Origin: Octopus sinensis
Lineage: Eukaryota
Length of the DNA: 64,000 nt
Reading direction: 5' to 3'
Assembly: GCF_006345805.1 (NCBI RefSeq)
Contig: NW_021829832.1
Location: forward strand, 682,001 to 746,000
The notes beneath the pieces were generated by a model. That model made no database searches, had not been told where the DNA came from, and saw nothing but the letters and a program-made list of their open reading frames with translations. Below are positions 35,935 through 58,450 of this stretch, piece after piece. Each line of letters begins with the position of its first letter. Position 1 is the first letter of the stretch. The translations under genes were made by a program, and so were the position numbers.

Positions 35935-36950
35935 CATCTGGAGGAGTTCAGACGTCTGGAAATGCTAGACGCAAATACCTCCCTATTCCTGCTAAAAAAC
36001 GCCTTGTCAGTACAGAAACTAAATTACGTCCTTCGGGGCGTACCCTGCTACTTGGAAATGCAACAGCTCGACAATATCGATTGTCTCTTTCGGACCATTA
36101 TTGAACGCATCACGAATGTGAAATTTGACGACCAAGGGTGGGAGGGTCCACTTTGTGGGACCAAGCGACCCTATCCTTCTCCGAAGGATCTGGCTTGCCC
36201 CGCATATCTATCCTCTTTGGACTCCAGCCGACTGCTGATCAGGATGATTCTCCAACTCCAAACTGAATCATCTGAAATCACAGACATGGAGCATTCGAGG
36301 GGGATAATGCCTGAGCAGAAAGATCGTTACAGGACCATCTGCGAGGATAAATATGAGAGGCTTCTGAACCAATCAAACCAACACAGACGTGCCTGTCTAG
36401 TGACTGGAAGATGCCAATCGAGTGGAGCTTGGATCAAAGCACTCCCCGTTGATAGTGTCGGAACCCACCTTGACGACGATACTGTCCGCATCAGCATCAG
36501 ACTTGGACTGGAGATTTGCCGGACTCACAAATGCCGGTGTGGGGCCACCGTCGATTGTTATGGACACCATGCCCTCTCTTGTCTAAGAAGTGCAGGACGA
36601 TTTCCAAGACACAAAGCGATCAACGAAATTGTCAAGCGAGCCCTGGAGTCTGCAGAATACCCAGCTGTGCTTGAACCGGTCGGGCTTGACAGAGGAGATG
36701 GAAAACGTCGTGATGGGATCACAATTTTGAAGAGGGGAAACCCCTAGTTTGGGACGCAACCTGTGTGGACACTCTCTGCCAGTCCAACATTGCCGGGAGG
36801 ACAGACTGTATGCCGCGGAAAAAACGATGAGGGCAAAGGAGAGAAAATATGAAGCGCTGCGAGACCGATTCATGTTCTGTCCGATTGTGGCCGAGACAAC
36901 TGGAGGAATGGATAAATTCGAATCACAGCACTATCCACCAGCTGAAATAA
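35935..36950 (+). mobile_element. CRE-clade retrotransposon 3' half, distinct family
   Basis: CRTHKCRCGATVDCYGHHALSC..AGRFPRH, LEPVGLDRGDGKRRDG, FCPIVAETTG. Confidence 0.85.
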
Positions 36951-36952
36951 TA

Positions 36953-38783
36953 CACTCCATGAAATAAAAAACCGGATTTTCAAGTTTGCATGTTTTTATT
37001 AGTATTTTTTTTAATGTATATCAATTTTTAAATTACTTTTCAGCAATCGTTTGTTGTATCTTTTACTATTTTTAAAATTATAATGTATATTCGGCAAGTC
37101 TCGTGATGGGATGCGACGTGTTCAGACACTTTCTCGGAGCTCAACCTTCCTTCTTCAGCTGTCGAGGCTGGCTCAGTCTCTCGCAAAGCCGAGAGATGAA
37201 AGATTGGAAAGTACAAGGAGCTCTCTGAACGGTATCTGTTCACTCCCATCGCCGTCGAGACTTCCGGGGTCATCGGCGAAAAGTCTCTTTCCTTTCTAAA
37301 AAGCTTGGCCGCATGATCTCCCATAAACGGGGAGACCCACGCGAGTCCAAGTGGCTTTTCGAAGGATTTCCTTGGCCATAGTACGTGGAAACTGTGTTTC
37401 CTTACGAGGCCGGAAATTAGTTAGTTATTAATAACTATTTGTCAATTACATAAACTTCCTAAAAAAAAAAAAAAAAAAAATTGAATAATTGATCTTGATA
37501 AAATCTTAGCGTGTATTAAAAAACGGATTTTTTTTGATTAGTCTGTTGCTAAGCCAATTTTTAGGTATTTGAAAAAATGCTTGATAAATCACTAAAGGAA
37601 AGATTCTAGCACACATTCAATAAATTGGACACAAAAAAGATTGTTGAGGAGCTGAATATTCCAACTTCGACTCTTAATGATTTTCTGAATAAGTTAAATA
37701 AAAAAAGACTGTTGATCGTATACCTGGTTCTGGAAGACCCAAAAAGCTCTCTAACTCAGATATTTGTAAACTTGTCAACATTGTGAAAGAAAATCCAAAA
37801 AAAACACTGGCCAACCTGAAAGAAGAAGTCTTCGATTTTACAGGAAAACTTGTCTGCAAAAAAACAATAAGCAATTATCTACATGAAAATCATTACAAAG
37901 CATGTGTGTAAAAGAAAACCTTTATTATCAAAAAAAATAGTGAAAAACAATACGAGCTTTCAATAATCTTTTCTGCAATAAGCAATGAAACGTGGAGAAC
38001 TGTTATATGTAGTGACGAGGCTTCCTTTGAAATTTTTTCATCTAAAAAAATAAAATTTTGCTTTAAAAAAATTACAGCCTTAAATTATGCCCATTTAACG
38101 CCAACCTTGAAGTTTGGTGGGGGAAAAATTATGGTATGGGGTTGTATCTCCTATCATGGAAAGGGGAATTTGGTTATAGTAAATGAAAAAATAAATTCTG
38201 CTGTATATATCAACATTTTAATAAATAATTAGTGGAAATCGGCAGATAAAATGGGGCTAAATCGTTTTATTTTCCAACAAGATTTGCCCCCCTGTCATAA
38301 TTCACGGAGAACAAAACAATTTTTGGATGAGAAAAAAATTGAATAAAAAAAATTGAATTGGGCACCACAATCACCAGATTTGAATCCAATTGAACATGTG
38401 TGGAGCTACATAAAGGAAGAATTGAGTAAAAAAAGCTGCATAGTAAAAAGGATTTATGCGAAAATATCATAAAAATTTGGGACGAAATACCAATGGAATT
38501 TGTGAGAAAATTAACTGAAAGCATGCCAAGAAGAAGCATTGAGCTTTATAAGGCACACGGAGGACACATTAATTATTAATCATTTGACTTTTTTTCTAAT
38601 CCGGTTTTTTTTACACAGAAAAAATTTAATATAGTCAGTTTAGCTGTACAAAAAGATTATTGAAAAATTATAAAAAGAAAAGTTACGAAGATTATCATTA
38701 TAAATTAAAAAAAGTCTAAAATTAAAAACAGAATATCAAAAAAATTAAGCATTCGAAAATCCGGTTTTTTATTACATGGAGTG
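36953..38783 (+). mobile_element. Tc1-family DNA transposon, degenerate, with TA TSD
   Basis: TIRs CACTCCATG(A/T)AATAAAAACCGGATTTTC flanked by TA; internal copies of the AAAA(C)CGGATT motif; CSDEASF, GGGKIMVWG, FQQD, SPDLNPIEHVW. Confidence 0.85.
37092..37480 (+). mobile_element. CRE 3' fragment with poly(A)20, nested in the Tc1 element
   Basis: GKSLVWDATC.DTF..RWKV..YLFTPIAVETSG..RGN, followed by A20 at 37461-37480. Confidence 0.85.
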
Positions 38784-39940: not shown

Positions 39941-40731
39941 TTAAAAAAATATTTTAAGACTCTAAATTTAATTAAAAGAAATAAATAAGTCTGTTTTTTT
40001 TGGTACACAAAATAACTTGATTTGGTACATTGACTTTTCTTTTTGGGACACCAAAAAAAAGGTTGAGAATCACTGCTTTAGAGGACTCTGGAGAGTGTCT
40101 TGTTTGATGCTTGCCGATCCAAAATCAGCGAGAGGCGCTGGACTGCACCTTCTCGAATGGTCTACAGTGCCGGAGAAGAGGAGGAAGAAGGCCATCCTCT
40201 GCTTACTTCGAAGGCTCTGGACTTAGAAAATTATTTAGTTAATTAGTCTCTTTTTATTAATAAAGGACAAATTATAAATAAGACACATTTCGATACTACC
40301 TAATCTAACTAATGGTCAGGATCGGAATTTGTTTTTTGAAAAGATGAAACATAATTGTAATAATATTTTTAAAAAAGACTGTTGATCACTTGGCTACACG
40401 TTGTTACTGAATGGTCTACAGTTCATATACACGGAGACATAATGAATAAGATGTATTCATTTACATATTTGTTGCGAGTTCAGAATAAAAAATACAAACA
40501 CAAACAGTTGAATCACTGTGTACAGTGGGTCAAATTAGTTCTGGGACACCTGTTTATTTTTAATAAAATTTTTATTTTTCAATAACATAACTTTTTTATT
40601 CGATTTTTTAAAGTATAAAAGTGCACCTATACCATTTTCAGTTCAATTCTGACATTTTTATATCCATTTTGACTTTGCGATATCCAATATTGACAATGCG
40701 ATAAGCAATATTGACATTTTTTTATCAAATT

Positions 40732-42025
40732 CCGGATCCTTGGATCCCCCATCCTGCCGACTGCTATTAAGACTGATCTTCTTACCAAACATTCCACGTT
40801 AACTATTTTGCTGGACCGCCTCACGTTTTTGGACAGCCACGTCGGCCTGTTTCTTGCGAGAAACTTTTTCGCCCTGCCTAAATTACTCTACTCCCTCAGA
40901 AGTGCACCTTGTTACCTACATGAGGACATTCTCACTGATCTCGGCGACTCCCTTCGTTCGAAGATCGAATCAATATGCAATGTCGAGTTCGACTCTTTGG
41001 GGTGGAGTCAAGCTTCACTCCCCGTACGCCACGGAGGCCTTGGAATTCGGTGTCCGAATGATGTTGCACTGCCTGCCTACCTGTCGTCACTTTCTTCATG
41101 CCAGAAACTCATGGGCACGGTTCTTCCAACCGATTTTGAACATTACGTGCCCTCTGAGTTATCATCGGCGGTCGTAAAGTGGCACTCGCTAGGACTGGAA
41201 ATCCCAGAGGATCAGCATAAGCAATTTGTTTGGGACGAAGTCCGCCTACAATCCCGAATCCATTCTTTACGTAAATCTCTCGACCAACACCGCTTGGCCT
41301 GCTTTGAGACGGCATGTCGCCCTCACAGCGGAGCCTGGCTAAATGCCACTCCACTGCCGAGCATTGGGAACCTTCTGGACTGCGAGTCCGTACGCACTGG
41401 AATCTGTTTACGTCTCGGTCTTCGCCTTTGCGAGCCACATGTCTGCCGCTGTGGCGCGAAAATCTGTCGCTTTGGATTGCACGCTCTATCGTGTAGACGC
41501 AGTGCTGGTCGCATCCCGCGTCACGCCGCTCTTAACGACCTTATCAGGAGAGCCCTGGAAGTCGCCGGAATCCCCTCCCTGCTTGAACCCACTGGGATCG
41601 ATCGGGGGGACGGAAAAAGGCCTGACGGGATAACTGTGTTTCCTTTCAACAGGGGGAAGCCTCTCACCTGGGATGCCACGTGTGTGGACTCTTTCTCGCC
41701 TCAGAACCTGCTGATGTCGGCCTCCGCTCCTGGATCTATTGTCACAACCGCGGAATGCAAAAAGATGCGGAAGTACTCCTCACTTACGGAGAAGTTCCAA
41801 TTCCTTCCATTCGCGGTTGAGACTTCCGGTTCCTTGGGCAGTAAGGCAATCAGCTTCGTTCAGGAGATCGGTTCCCGCATGTCTGCCATCACAGGCGACG
41901 CCCGCGAATCGAGATGGTTTTTCGAGCGGATATCCCTTGCGATAGTACGCTCTAATTCTTTCTCGATCGCGTCGGCTTCCCGCACTTGAAGCTTTTAATT
42001 AATTAACTTGTAGTTATTGGTTGGT
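40732..42025 (+). mobile_element. 5'-truncated CRE retrotransposon with intact frame, 15-bp TSD and no poly(A)
   Basis: TSD TTTTTTTATCAAATT at 40717-40731 and 42026-42040. Open frame to 41989 with CxC..HxxxC knuckle and KRPDG..WDATC..AVET RLE. Confidence 0.92.
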
Positions 42026-42298: not shown

Positions 42299-42331
<33 letters not shown>

Positions 42332-45300
42332 TTAAGTAACTACTAAGTAAAGTCAACAAACTAATAAATTCTCCCAGCGAGACGGAGGGAACAGCTGTTG
42401 CCACGCATGACAGCCAGCAGGATCCTCTGAATGAGGAAAGTAAATTCCCTAGGGTCCTTGGACCGCGAAGAACAAAGATGTCCCAGTTTCTTTAGGGAAG
42501 TGAGGGTCCCGGAGCCAAAGACGCCGGAAGTCTCGACAACGATTGGCCAAAACCAAAAGTCATCCATCAAAGACTGATATTTCCGGCACTTCGAAAGCTC
42601 AGCCTTATTAGCACGAGACCCAGCAAGAGAGGCCGATTCGTTGATGAAAGACTTTGAGAAGGTATCCACACAAGTGGAATCCCAGACCAAAGGTCTCCCA
42701 GAATAAAACGAGAACAACGTAGAGCCGTCCGGCCTTTTCCCGTCACCACGGTCGAGACCCTTAGGCTCAAGGACAGAAGGGTAGCCGGCCTTTTCGAGTG
42801 AGTCGAGAATGATTCTGTTAATCGCCGAATGGCGTGGAATACGACCCGCGCTTTTCTTGCAGGAGAGGGCATGGAGCCCGTATACGTCCATAGTAGATCC
42901 GCACCGGCAGGGGTGGGGACTACAGATCGGAAGTCCGAGGCGGAGGCAAATGCCAAAACGGAGGGCGTCGGAGTCAAGACAGGTGTCCAAATGGGTCGAA
43001 GGAAGGCAGTTAAGCCAAGAGCCAGAATGCGGTTGGCGGCTGGCACGGTAACAAGCCAGTCTGTGCTGGTTCAGGAGAGCCTCCAACGAGTCCGCATGAT
43101 GCTTACTAAGAATTTTATCCCATTCACGTTGGAGGGACCTATCAGAAGGGAACTCAAGCCCTTTTTCCTTCCAAAGCAAAAGTGCAGAATTAATATCAGA
43201 GTCCAAACGAGATCCGGGCGATTTTTCAAGAATCTTATGGACAAGAAGATACAATCCTGAAGACGATGAAAGGAAAGCGGGAAGAGAAATGTCGAGAGCC
43301 GAGCGGAGCCCAAGCCCACCAAAAGGAACAGGAAGTTTGGCCTGACGCCAACCGACATCATCGAACTTGACGTTAAAAATAATCTCGGCTGAAGAACGCA
43401 CCAGAGCGTCAAAAGACTCCAAAGCAGAGGGAACAGAAAAGCAACAGGAACTCCTTAGGACATAATTGATCCTCGGAATCAAAAGAAAGTTTTTGAGGAT
43501 AAAAAAAGCGGGATGGGGATCGATGTCCACAAGTTTATCACAAAGAGAAGCAAGAGCATTTCTCTTGGAATCGAGAATACGAGAGACCGATTGGTGGTGG
43601 ATCGGGGCACCCAGGATTTCAAGTTCAGAATAAGAGGTCTGCCTCAGATCGGGCAAGAGGCCACGAAACTGGGCAAAAAGGTCTTCGAAGGTGAGGTCTT
43701 CGACGTTAAGATTAACGATTTCAGATTTTAGAGAATTGATTTCAAGACCAATAGATGACAACGCCGGGAGTAGAGATTGCAAGTCGTTTAGCAAAATGTC
43801 GGGCGGACCACCAATAGTACAGTCGTCCAAATACCAAATATTAAGAGGGGACGCAATCCTGCGGGCGACAAAGTCCACCGAGAGGGCAAATAATAAAGGA
43901 CCCAAAGGATCGCCTTGCTGTACGCCACAGGAAGACGAAATGAAAGAATCGCCAGCAACCAAGAGGGTCGGGTTACCATAAGAAAGAAAAATGAAGGGCA
44001 GCAGAGAAGGAATTCTGGCCTTGCAAACCTCAAGAAGATGCTTTCTATTGAGCGAATTGAAAGCGTTCTTCACATCCAATTTTATAATAACTGGGGCCGC
44101 TCTGAGAGACGAGCCGATTCAATGAAACACCGGGCAGCGTGGACCGAGGCCTCGCACCCACCAGGTACCCCCACACCCAACTGAATGGGCTGGAGTTCGT
44201 CGCTAATAGAAGGAATTACAAGCTTGCATCCGACCTTTGCAAACAAGCGACGAAAAACGTTCCCGACGGCAATAGGTCTGATGCCGCCGTCTTTCTTCCC
44301 CAAAGCAGACAGGTTCGCAGAGAAGAAGAGCAGTCTGGCATGCTCGGATATGTCCCCACGGAGAAATAGGTTACAAAGCTTGGCAATGGATTGAGAAAGA
44401 CGGTTTCCAGCCTCAGCAGTATTGGAGATGAGGTCCATTAAGTGAATGGGACGGAGACCGTCAACACCACCACTACTGTTCCCCCTGAAAGATTTCAAAG
44501 CAAACAAAAGTTGTTGGACAGATGAAGAGGCGATCGAGACCTCCTCAGGGGTCCGGGCACAAAAGGCAGGGACATCGCCAGCCGGGTGCTTGGCGCTGAG
44601 AATTTTGAGGACATCCGGGGTTATCGAACGGACGGAATCGGAAGACGAAAGAATACGGACCGCAGAGCCGACATCATGCGCCATAAGGCAGGAATTGACA
44701 CGTTTGCGTAAACGAATACGATTATCTTTAAGAGTAGTTGGTTCATGGGACTTGCCCAGAAGAGGAGGCAGAATGAAGGAATCCTCCATGAACTTATTAA
44801 TATTTTCCTTGATGGAAGAGGAAAGGGATTTTACCGAGCCCAAGCCTTGAACTGGGGAGCCCAGGGCAAATATGGCAAAGCAAAACAAACGGTTCCAATT
44901 CGGAATGGACTGAACACAAATGACTGACTCGATCAAAGCAGACAGAGCCTTCGCCGCGGAAAAACGGGCAGAACGAGGAATTCTTATAGGAATACGATAG
45001 GACGCCCGGTAATCACGAGCGAGTCTTAAGACAGACTCTGGATTAAGCAGGAAGGGGTCCGGCGAAGGGATAGGATTAGTAAAATCAGAGGACCCGGTAC
45101 AGATGGCAGGAGCGAAATATGACGGGGGGAAAGAAGAGCAAGCAGAGCAAACCCATCGGGAAAGGGAAGAGGCAGATTTCTTAGAAAGCTTGATGCAGGA
45201 TAAATGGAAAAAGGCATAACAACGGTCACAACGGATGGTCTTTTTCCGATTATTACGGATATTGCAAACAGAACAGACAGACATAGATATGGAAAATTAG

Positions 45301-45400
45301 AATTAGCAATAAATGGATTATTGGTGAGATAGAAAGAAAGAGAAAGAGGAAAAGAAAAACAAAAAAGAGAAAGGGAAGCAACAATGGATTATTGGATAGC
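42299..45400 (-). mobile_element. Near full-length CRE-clade RLE retrotransposon: PHD finger - RT - zinc knuckle - restriction-like endonuclease
   Basis: ORFs 45284-44082 and 44079-42361 join by a 1-nt frameshift in LL(I)KLDVKNAFN. GVQQGDPLGPLLF, WYLDD, KRPDG. T30 (poly-A tail) at 42299-42328. N-terminal C4HC3 finger. Confidence 0.93.
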
Positions 45401-45408
45401 AAATAACA

Positions 45409-46285
45409 ATGAAGGGTTCTATAAATGTCGTCCACGTAAAGTTCCGCTCCTTACTAAGAATCGCGTTTATCCACGATCACAATATACAAAAAAAAATTTA
45501 CTTCAAGACGAAGACTTACTAATTGGATTCATTTTGTTCACATTCCAAAGAGTAAAGTGTTCACATTCCAAAGAGTAAAGTATGGAACATTATCAATAAA
45601 TGGAAATTACTAAAAACTATTAAAAATAAGCCAAGATTAGGACAACGAAAAAAAATATCAGCATGCCCTAAGAATAAAAGGGTTCTATGAATGAATGAAT
45701 TTATTTATTTAAAAAGAAAAGCCGAAAAAGAGAGATAAAGTTAATGAAACAACGTATGTCTCTTCTGCGTTGTTTTCCTCTTTTTTATGTTTAATTTAAG
45801 ATTTGAGAGGAAAAGGCTCTCTCAAGAACACTTCCAATCGTTCCCGTCGCGTCTTCCATCTCTTAAGGGATGGGTTGGTCCAGCTGGGGTCCATTTGCCA
45901 ATTTGATGGCATATCGTTTCGTCTTTTCGATCTTAGCGATAATGATATCCCTCTCAGCAGTAGGATACCATTTCTCGAACCCGTAGGTAAGCAATGGTTC
46001 GACGTATGTTTTATAAACATATAAAAATGTTTCCGGACAAAGGTGGAAGTGAATTATGCTCCTGAGAATTTGAACGCATTTCCTTCTCCTCGAATCGATG
46101 TATCTGGAGTAAGAACCCTTGGATCCAACTTCAACCCCAAGATATTTCAGGTTTTCCGTTACTGTAAACCCATGAAGGGTTCTATAAATGTCGTCCACGT
46201 AAAGTTCCGCTCCTTACTAAGAATCGCGTTTATCCACGATCACAATATACAAAAAAAAATTTACTTCAAGACGAAGACTTACTAA
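45409..46285. repeat. 114-bp direct repeat (45409-45522 and 46172-46285)
   Basis: Apparently identical ATGAAGGGTTCTATAAATGTCG...GAAGACTTACTAA in both places. Confidence 0.9.
45689..46174 (-). mobile_element. 5'-truncated LINE with 11-bp TSD
   Basis: LKYLGVEV..YKTYVEPLLTYG. Tail (AAAT)n(TCAT)n. TSD AAGGGTTCTAT at 45678-45688 and 46175-46185. Same family as 57655-58450. Confidence 0.8.
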
Positions 46286-57654: not shown

Positions 57655-58450
57655 ATATTTTTTTTATTAAAATGGAAAAGCCAAAAAAAGAGAAAGTTAA
57701 TGAGACAACGTATGCCTCTTCTCCGTTCTTTCCTTTTTTTATGTTTAATTCAAGATTCAAGAGGAAAAGGCTCTCTCAAGAACACTTCCAATCGTTTCCG
57801 TCGTGTCTTCCATCTCTTGAGGGATGGGTTGGTCCAGCTGGGGTCCATTTGCCAATTTGATGGCATATCGTCTCGTCTTTTCGAGCTTAGCGATAATGAT
57901 ATCCCTCTCAGCAGTAGGATACCATTTCTCGAACCCGTAGGTAAGCAATGGTTCGATTACGTTTTATAAACATATAAAAATGTTTCCGGACAAAGGTGGA
58001 AGTGAATTATGCTCCTGAGAATTTGAGCGCATTTCCTTCTCCTCGAGTCGATGTATCTGAAGTAAAAACTTTTGGATCCAACTTCAACCCCAAGGTATTT
58101 CAGGTTCTCCGTTACTGTAAACCCATGGAGGTTTCTCGGCGGTTTTCGTTTAGCTCCCTGTTTTGCAATCCAAGTGGCGGTGCACTTTTCTTTTGCGAGT
58201 TTCAGTTCTTTTGATATGCACCACTCTTCCACTCTTGTCACGTATCCTCTTAATTTCCTCCACGAGATGTCTTTTCTCCACGAAGCATTCGTTATTAGTA
58301 TGTCGTCCGCCTAGATCATGAGACGACTGGTAGGATCTTTCGGTTTTGGAATATCAACAACGTAAATATTAAAAAGCAGAGGGCTCAAGACCGAGCCTTG
58401 AGGTACCCTTCTCAAGACGGAGCAGGAAATATTAGTTGCAACTATTGTAA
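57655..58450 (-). mobile_element. LINE RT fragment, longer copy of the 45689-46174 family
   Basis: VPQGSVLSPLLFNIYV, *ADD (stop in place of Y), LKYLGVEV. Near-identical to 45720-46174. Confidence 0.8.

Follow-up and report, generated by a model that had tools for sequence, protein, structure and literature searches.

The 64,000-nucleotide stretch of the Octopus sinensis genome analyzed here (contig NW_021829832.1, positions 682,001 to 746,000, hereafter the window) carries on its minus strand a 3.1-kb retrotransposon of the kind without long terminal repeats (LTRs), a non-LTR retrotransposon, whose protein opens with a PHD finger and continues with a reverse transcriptase (RT), a CCHC zinc knuckle and a restriction-like endonuclease (RLE). 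The reading that best explains the evidence, and probably the correct one, is that this copy is a defective, young octopus long interspersed nuclear element (LINE) of the RLE type, in which an inherited, basic PHD finger serves as the N-terminal target-engagement module.

Architecture of the element

The features of the element, in window coordinates, are the following:

42299-45413, minus strand: whole copy of the retrotransposon, its 5′ end near 45413 and the final A of its tail at 42299 (homology shared with L001, a second copy)
45285-45413, minus strand: 5′ untranslated region (UTR), 129 nt, 78% pyrimidine (composition); probably lacking some 51 nt at its 5′ end
44085-45284, minus strand: reading frame part 1, 400 aa, with the PHD finger, a disordered linker, a helical N-terminal domain and the RT fingers (open reading frame (ORF) listing, Pfam, AlphaFold2)
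45138-45275, minus strand: PHD finger, aa 4-49, CSVC-x11-CDRC-x4-H-x2-C-x15-CSAC (PF00628, AlphaFold2/Foldseek, ligand conservation)
44574-45041, minus strand: lineage-specific helical N-terminal domain, aa 82-237 (conserved alignment columns, AlphaFold2 helices)
44083-44087, minus strand: frameshift site, one T missing from TTATTATTAAAA, which makes a TAA stop in frame 1 (comparison with L001)
42361-44103, minus strand: reading frame part 2, with RT motifs A-E, linker, CCHC and RLE (580-aa open frame; TAG stop at 42363-42361)
43600-44297, minus strand: RT core, from KKDGGIRPIAVG (44297-44262) to LEILGAPI (43623-43600) (motif mapping)
42859-42909, minus strand: CCHC zinc knuckle CRCGSTMDVYGLHALSC (motif mapping; aligns to the R2 CCHC)
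42577-42846, minus strand: PD-(D/E)xK endonuclease, the RLE (motif mapping; aligns to the R2 RLE in a profile search)
42329-42360, minus strand: 3′ UTR, 32 nt, its last part unlike that of L001
42299-42328, minus strand: poly(A) tail, 30 nt (T30 on the plus strand)

Much of this layout had been described in an earlier note made from the sequence alone, and most of that description stands. The translation, which begins MSVCSVCNIRNNRKKTIRCDRCYAFFHLSC, reproduces exactly the proposed N-terminal pattern MSV-CSVC-x11-CDRC-x4-H-x2-C-x13-W-V-CSAC, spacing included. The RT, zinc knuckle and endonuclease named there are all located: part 2 matches RVT_1 (E=4.6e-12, Pfam) and contains the RT motifs KLDVKNAFNS, GVQQGDPLGPLLF and WYLDDCTIGG, with the catalytic YLDD at 43836-43807, while the RLE carries GRIPRHSAINRII (RH..N), GKRPDG, VWDSTCV and KAELSKCRKY (K..KY) and is of the PD-D-K pattern. 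The 30-nt poly(A) had been recognized, as had the pyrimidine-rich 5′ UTR with its internal repeat; the UTR has a core of 55 nt at 93% pyrimidine, and a 13-nt repeat, CCAATAATCCATT, occurs in it twice (45395-45383 and 45324-45312). The span given for the element, 42299-45400, lies close to the homology with L001, which runs from 45413 to 42308, and 'near full-length' is a fair description, L001 carrying about 51 nt more 5′ sequence. What needs correction is the 'single ~970-aa reading unit': its parts of 400 aa and 572 aa lie in different frames (the second, the ORF proper, at 44079..42361, in a frame open from 44103 for 580 codons before the stop), and the unit is therefore one ORF broken once.

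The AlphaFold2 model of the 400-aa part has a mean predicted local distance difference test score (pLDDT) of 86. Behind the finger follows a linker of ~30 aa, modeled as disordered (pLDDT below 50 for aa 58-68), and then a helical domain that is confidently modeled over aa 82-232 and bears two conserved boxes, RIPxxARxxAAxAL and GDIxAAVR...KHP. A Myb or helix-turn-helix fold was sought in these confidently predicted helices, and Foldseek returned no significant match for aa 82-232; there is therefore no evidence of a Myb domain at this position. No Pfam match to an apurinic/apyrimidinic endonuclease (APE) domain was obtained in the element's reading frames.

The finger is a genuine PHD by sequence and by predicted fold

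The hidden Markov model scan that the earlier note had proposed as a check places the finger above the Pfam gathering cut-off for PF00628 (24 bits), at 32.7 bits within the 400-aa frame and 38 bits for aa 1-70. The ligands follow the C4HC3 pattern with PHD spacing. AlphaFold2 models aa 1-50 at a pLDDT of ~90 in what is predicted to be the interleaved two-zinc PHD fold, and the top 50 Foldseek matches to the finger are all PHD fingers, with root-mean-square deviations of 1.2-2 Å over ~50 residues; the Alfin-like, BPTF, Pygo, UHRF1, PHF2/8 and TAF3 fingers are among the best of them. Across 19 relatives of 26-41% identity, each of the eight zinc ligands is either invariant or conserved to at least 90%, and 16 of the 19 sequences of the PHD alignment match PF00628.

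Two near-identical copies and their insertion junctions

The second copy, L001, lies on O. sinensis contig VCDQ01001009.1 (GCA_006345805.1) and is 99.2% identical to the window copy over 3.1 kb (window 45413..42308). The flanks of the two copies are unrelated, which fixes the ends of the element and bears out the claim of dispersed copies in the earlier note. Within the PHD region (45275-45138) the copies show zero differences. Each is disabled in its own way: the window copy has lost one T from TTATTATTAAAA near 44085, a base that is present in L001, and L001 carries three other 1-nt deletions, so that the frameshifts are private to each copy. A programmed frameshift at 44085 was considered and rejected, because L001 and all relatives read straight through this position. 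Two near-identical copies with private lesions point to recent activity, probably from an intact source copy elsewhere; on sequence comparison, the window copy is thus probably a recently inserted, now defective representative of an autonomous, poly(A)-tailed non-LTR retrotransposon. The two copies differ at the end of the 3′ UTR (window 42329-42348 versus L001 6807-6830) despite being otherwise 99% identical, a difference that may stem from distinct source copies, from 3′ transduction or from alternative polyadenylation.

The nearest database protein, P0001, is the product of O. sinensis LOC115229063 and is 99-100% identical to the window protein over the part it covers. This RefSeq gene model (L001 4001-5701) is itself a transposon copy, and it begins downstream of the PHD finger, because L001 has a frameshift just after the finger (opposite window 45129). 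A protein-coding annotation in RefSeq might be taken to mean that the window locus is a domesticated host gene of the LOC115229063 kind and not a transposon copy. That is very improbable in view of the DNA-encoded poly(A), the two 99%-identical copies with different flanks and private frameshifts, the target-site duplication (TSD) of L001, and the many diverged fragments of relatives within the same 64 kb.

At its 3′ end L001 has A13 followed by TGTAACAAT, and the same string also occurs just 5′ of this copy. The TSD measures 9-12 bp, up to AAATGTAACAAT, and is located 51 nt upstream of the start of similarity between the two copies, which indicates that the window copy is slightly 5′-truncated. 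The window copy lies inside another LINE fragment and adjoins AT-rich DNA; its 5′ junction overlaps the flank by 5 nt (TTCAT microhomology), and its surroundings are rearranged as follows:

45409-46285, minus strand: disturbed 5′ junction, with a perfect 114-bp direct repeat (46285-46172 and 45522-45409) around a 649-bp LINE fragment

The 114-bp repeat ends exactly at the 5′ junction of the element, the piece that it brackets is a 3′ fragment of an unrelated LINE, and the last 12 nt of the repeat already belong to that unrelated LINE family.

Four further elements, family members or relatives, end in tails of A10-A25 (L003, L006 and two that lie in the window), and 5′-truncated relatives are present in the window, L006 and L007. 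Taken over the element and related families, six 3′ junctions have tails of A10-A30 and AT-rich, mutually unrelated flanks that start with T in all six cases and with TT in five. This pattern fits dispersed, poly(A)-dependent priming, six junctions being too few for a target logo.

The PHD finger is inherited within one branch of a very large lineage

Relatives were gathered by two large homology searches and by an exhaustive HMMER scan of representatives of 50% clusters. The scan returned 5738 representatives at E<=1e-3 and 226 at E<=1e-30, and the named hosts of the lineage include Octopus, the cuttlefish Acanthosepion, several Lepidoptera, the psyllid Diaphorina citri, a tardigrade, an acanthocephalan and a red alga. 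Many relatives keep one uninterrupted ORF of 890-1035 aa in which the domains follow the same order, and several that combine PHD, RT and RLE are intact as single ORFs of 950-1035 aa.

A regular-expression screen identified an N-terminal C4HC3 finger in 21 relatives from the two large searches (counted as 90%-cluster matches); the top 150 representatives of 50% clusters yielded a further 25 sequences with such a finger. Within O. sinensis itself, a second family that is 40% identical to the element has its own finger, CSSCKTSNDRKKGRYCSGCNSFFHLSCV...WNCPVC, at L008 8698-8844. Other relatives carry a single N-terminal C2H2 finger at the same position, for example CPHCSNSSRTFTSHGLKIHIGHKH. The C2H2-bearing relatives from Plutella, Mythimna, Leguminivora, Choristoneura and other Lepidoptera are 38-42% identical over RT and RLE and share the length (~940-1000 aa) and the N-terminal helical boxes of the octopus element, differing in that their finger is C2H2 and not PHD; the Ramazzottius and Neoechinorhynchus relatives likewise have a C2H2-like N-terminal finger. 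Pfam matches and motifs support the description in the earlier note of an RLE-type LINE with an N-terminal PHD finger, which stands where relatives bear C2H2.

In a neighbor-joining tree of RT plus RLE (86 sequences, midpoint-rooted, without support values, many of the N-termini being truncated gene calls), the PHD-bearing members fall into one major clade, with the exception of P0201 near the base of the other, and the C2H2-bearing members fall into that other major clade. The occurrence of the finger in a second copy, in a second family and in diverged relatives, concentrated in one major clade, indicates an old, inherited and selected module and not a captured host exon. Sequence comparison thus establishes the PHD finger as an inherited, conserved module of one deep branch of this very large lineage. 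A one-off capture of a host exon, which the earlier note had listed as a refutation of its reading, or a read-through artefact of neighboring host sequence, might have been suspected from the NCBI model of the sister copy (P0001), which lacks the PHD. Its probability is next to negligible, given that the finger is identical in L001, recurs in the second O. sinensis family and in the 21 plus 25 diverged sequences, and has conserved zinc ligands. Canonical-looking PHD fingers of a different kind occur in a few other sublineages (GWFHGSC in Diaphorina citri KAI5728591.1, FWYHFSC in P0331), which suggests that PHD fingers were acquired more than once.

Several relatives depart from the common layout. 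The protein P0181 (1009 aa) continues after the RLE with a ubiquitin C-terminal hydrolase domain (PF00443, RRGLLNLGNTCYMNAGLQ...), which is either a genuine protease addition, of the sort that NeSL shows in its Ulp1 domain, or the product of fused gene calling. Five PHD-bearing sequences (P0240, P0248, P0256, P0296 and P0371) are 1256-1755 aa long, 300-800 aa above the usual 950-1000. The red-alga protein P0043 (Gracilariopsis chorda) is similar by eye to P0164, P0167 and P0170, which are placed in the PHD-bearing branch of the tree and of which P0167 retains the C-terminal half of a PHD; this likeness may mean that the hosts are not confined to animals, unless it stems from contamination.

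Classification within the R2 group in the wide sense

The assignment of the element to the RLE-type non-LTR retrotransposons (R2 group in the wide sense) is secure. A family profile built from 37 members and searched against PDB has its best matches in R2 proteins (E of about 1e-21 for 9nl2, 9nl3 and 9dou, 6e-15 for R2Bm), with an alignment that covers the pre-RT region, RT, linker, CCHC and RLE; the matches to group II intron RTs and L1 ORF2p are far weaker. A search with the single sequence reached R2Bm at E=0.026 only. The element also has a LINE-type RT with YxDD, a CCHC followed by PD-(D/E)xK on the C-terminal side of the RT, and footprints of target-primed reverse transcription (TPRT), in a single ORF (bar one 1-nt deletion) with no APE domain and no LTRs.

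R2 elements, among them R2Bm and R2Tg, are RLE-type LINEs of solved structure and present the same single-ORF order (N-terminal binding module, RT, linker, CCHC, PD-(D/E)xK) and the same TPRT hallmarks. In R2, the N-terminal zinc-finger (ZF) and Myb modules bind target DNA. Whereas R2 has a C2H2 and Myb N-terminus and one site in the 28S rDNA, the octopus element has a PHD finger and no detectable Myb, a poly(A) tail, a 32-nt 3′ UTR and copies in unrelated AT-rich DNA. The N-terminal motifs of R2-type elements are described in PMC7650587, together with the BLAG elements of the German cockroach, which are R2-like, likewise RLE-type and dispersed without site specificity, and variable in the number of N-terminal fingers. 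Membership of BLAG was considered and rejected: its signature motifs (FDTIVNEFTDFLSKAI..., RKKRRQASSEV...) are absent by eye, and its fingers are of the Cys-His type, not PHD.

Placement below this level is less firm. Members of the R4/Dong clade group with R4, Dong and Rex6, and many of them target rDNA or (TAA)n; no (TAA)n was seen at the 3′ junctions examined here. The label CRE, under which the earlier note placed the element, is not secure, as it comes only from a published octopus RT tree and from RTclass1 labels. According to that survey (PMC10294476), the CRE, R4 and Hero types occur among molluscs almost only in cephalopods, and a lineage restricted to O. sinensis, comprising 13 deeply diverged clusters, adjoins CZAR, SLACS, CRE1 and CRE2 in the RT tree. 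RTclass1 assigns CRE to two of these 13 clusters; the branch from the octopus lineage to the CRE references exceeds 3 substitutions per site; and the O. sinensis R4 clusters, among those listed, are parted by very short branches of 0-0.16 (same source). Many O. sinensis relatives are 46-64% identical to the element, a spread that appears to fit the diverse CRE-labeled lineage better than the octopus R4 groups, to judge by the R4 clusters listed.

The trypanosomatid members of the CRE clade (CRE1, CRE2, SLACS, CZAR) are likewise RLE-type elements with a single ORF and poly(A) (PMC12278014). Their insertions fall at a single position in spliced-leader RNA genes, and their N-terminus bears one or two ZF-like motifs of the Cys-His kind (PMC12278014); the octopus element shares neither trait, its two copies having unrelated flanks and its finger being a C4HC3 PHD.

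What the basic PHD finger may contact

Insertion would proceed by TPRT: the RLE would nick AT-rich DNA, the RT would start at the poly(A) end of the element RNA and copy it, and the second nick, being staggered, would produce the 9-12 bp TSD, with 5′ ends that would often be truncated or joined through microhomology. The PHD finger would act in this process as the N-terminal target-engagement module, the functional equivalent of the C2H2 finger of the relatives, and may make contacts of low sequence specificity with DNA, RNA or an acidic nucleosome surface, which would fit dispersed insertion.

The composition of the finger is the basis of this proposal. It contains 10 K/R against 1 D/E, and the net charge lies between +2 and +9 (mean +6.2) in all 22 fingers of the family subtype; the values for two UHRF1 PHD chains, as aligned by HMMER, are -4 and -8. 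Of the 25 additional fingers from the top 150 representatives, most are likewise positive, and a [KR][KR] basic pair in the loop between Cys2 and Cys3 recurs in most family fingers. Strongly basic and possessing neither an aromatic cage nor an acidic edge, the finger would most likely contact DNA, RNA or the acidic nucleosome surface.

Readers of H3K4me3 of the BPTF, ING and TAF3 type have an aromatic cage that includes a Trp two residues before the His. The corresponding residue is F here (F-F-H), as the earlier note had pointed out in cautioning against H3K4me3 reading; the caution was right and can be extended, since the same position varies from relative to relative (F, Y, T, N, R, L, I or W) and no aromatic residue able to complete a cage is present in the Cys2-Cys3 loop, NIRNNRKKTIR. 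In fingers of the PHF21A and AIRE type, acidic residues before Cys1 bind H3K4me0 or R2, and readers of this kind, UHRF1 included, show acidic residues around Cys1 and an acidic face. The octopus finger starts at residue 4 (MSV-C) and has no acidic residue before Cys1. Basic charge, a variable cage position and the missing N-terminal acid argue against both the K4me3 and the K4me0 mode.

These observations bear on the proposal, made in the earlier note, of targeting by chromatin state and not by DNA sequence, taken here in the form that the PHD finger reads histone tails (unmodified or methylated H3K4) and thereby steers integration. The PHD fold is genuine and its nearest neighbors are H3 readers (UHRF1, PHF12, WSTF, Alfin-like, BPTF, PHF21A); the copies are dispersed in unrelated AT-rich sequence; canonical-looking PHD fingers exist in other sublineages (KAI5728591.1, P0331); and a chromatin role has been proposed for the PHD fingers of CR1 ORF1 and other transposons (PMC8557442). 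The proposal nevertheless appears unlikely, since the 22 family fingers are positively charged while the H3 tail is itself basic and the UHRF1 chains are negative, and since both the cage residues and the acids of the PHF21A/AIRE type are wanting; in its canonical mode, histone reading is disfavored by the sequence. Engagement of nucleic acid or of the nucleosome is therefore favored over canonical H3K4 reading, as judged from residue content, and a non-canonical histone contact is possible.

The finger might also have no part in target choice and instead bind the element's own RNA, or recruit a host factor, for instance by serving as a protein-interaction or E3-like module, in the assembly of particles or in entry into the nucleus. 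A very basic surface would suit RNA, and the finger is tethered by a ~30-aa linker modeled as disordered. The 3′ UTR of 32 nt differs between copies, which makes recognition of a structured 3′ UTR in the manner of R2 unlikely, and other RNA contacts may then be needed. The PHD occupies, however, the very position of the C2H2 finger in the other major branch and is placed like the N-terminal ZF/Myb modules of R2. A role confined to RNA or host factors is quite improbable.

Several points weigh against the finger as a basic target-engagement module of a young, inherited element. The arguments from charge and from the missing cage residues are indirect, and there are PHD fingers that engage histone tails in a non-canonical way, as this one may. 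The nearest matches in sequence and fold are histone readers (UHRF1, Alfin-like, BPTF, PHF21A). The tree behind the inheritance of the finger is a neighbor-joining tree with midpoint rooting and without support values, in which truncated gene calls account for many of the N-termini. The sampling of target preference is poor, as it covers two family copies and a handful of 3′ junctions. No TSD was found for the window copy, and its 5′ junction is odd and duplicated.

A bolder version of target engagement by the basic finger, which we regard as speculative and doubtful, would hold that a deep and widespread branch among early-branching RLE-type LINEs swapped its sequence-reading C2H2 finger for a specialized basic PHD that docks the integration machinery on nucleosomes (on DNA, the acidic patch or a non-canonical histone surface), that targets would be set by chromatin context and not by DNA sequence, and that N-terminal modules (PHD, C2H2, and the cage-type PHDs of other sublineages) would be interchangeable targeting cassettes.

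PHD fingers in other transposable elements

PHD fingers have been reported in ORF1 of CR1-like LINEs (Kapitonov and Jurka 2003), in Chlamys Penelope-like elements and in Rehavkus DNA transposons, and transposon PHD fingers, including that of CR1 ORF1, were proposed to act on chromatin (PMC8557442). The CR1-type PHD belongs to a separate ORF1 of APE-type LINEs and the Penelope-like PHD lies inside RT or EN, whereas the octopus PHD, which is unusually basic, forms the N-terminal module in a polyprotein of the RLE type. Literature searches aimed at a PHD finger in an RLE-type LINE found no description of one, Repbase and Dfam lying outside the search. The architecture is common in raw sequence databases, where some entries are precomputed as PF00078 plus PF00628; the group that combines PHD, RT and RLE is apparently undescribed in print.

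Neighborhood of the element in the window

A 5′-truncated relative that is 45% identical to the PHD element (40721-41989, plus strand) ends with RT-RLE at 41989, tail-to-tail with it, and ~310 bp of AT-rich DNA separate the two 3′ ends (41989 and 42299). Five more diverged fragments of the lineage are present, at 35953-37407 (plus strand) and at 34344-33982, 21633-19229, 15333-14582 and 9955-9821 (minus strand), with 37-73% aa identity and all without an N-terminus; the 64-kb window is largely a transposon graveyard. No further PHD finger was found in the window, where the other six relatives are 5′-truncated fragments. Another LINE family is represented by two copies of 92.6% identity (45863-46198, minus strand, and 57659-58136), the ORF of which resembles a C-terminal RT part, FTVTENLKYLGVEV.... 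An exact 23-bp tandem duplication (TGTTCACATTCCAAAGAGTAAAG, twice) lies at 45535-45580, in the 3′ part of the neighboring LINE fragment.

Significance

Among LINEs, the RLE type is the oldest group, and the R2-derived tools for gene insertion now in use are built on it; its N-terminal DNA-binding modules decide the place of insertion. A large series of close relatives that differ mainly in this module, with a basic PHD, a single C2H2 finger or, in a few sublineages, cage-type PHDs, would constitute a natural experiment on how target choice is encoded and may be re-engineered. Chromatin-linked targeting is known for the chromodomains of LTR elements and suspected for the PHD of CR1 ORF1; if the octopus finger engages chromatin, such targeting would be extended to the RLE group. 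For octopus genomics, the element represents a young and probably still active family, and the RefSeq 'gene' LOC115229063 is really one of its copies.

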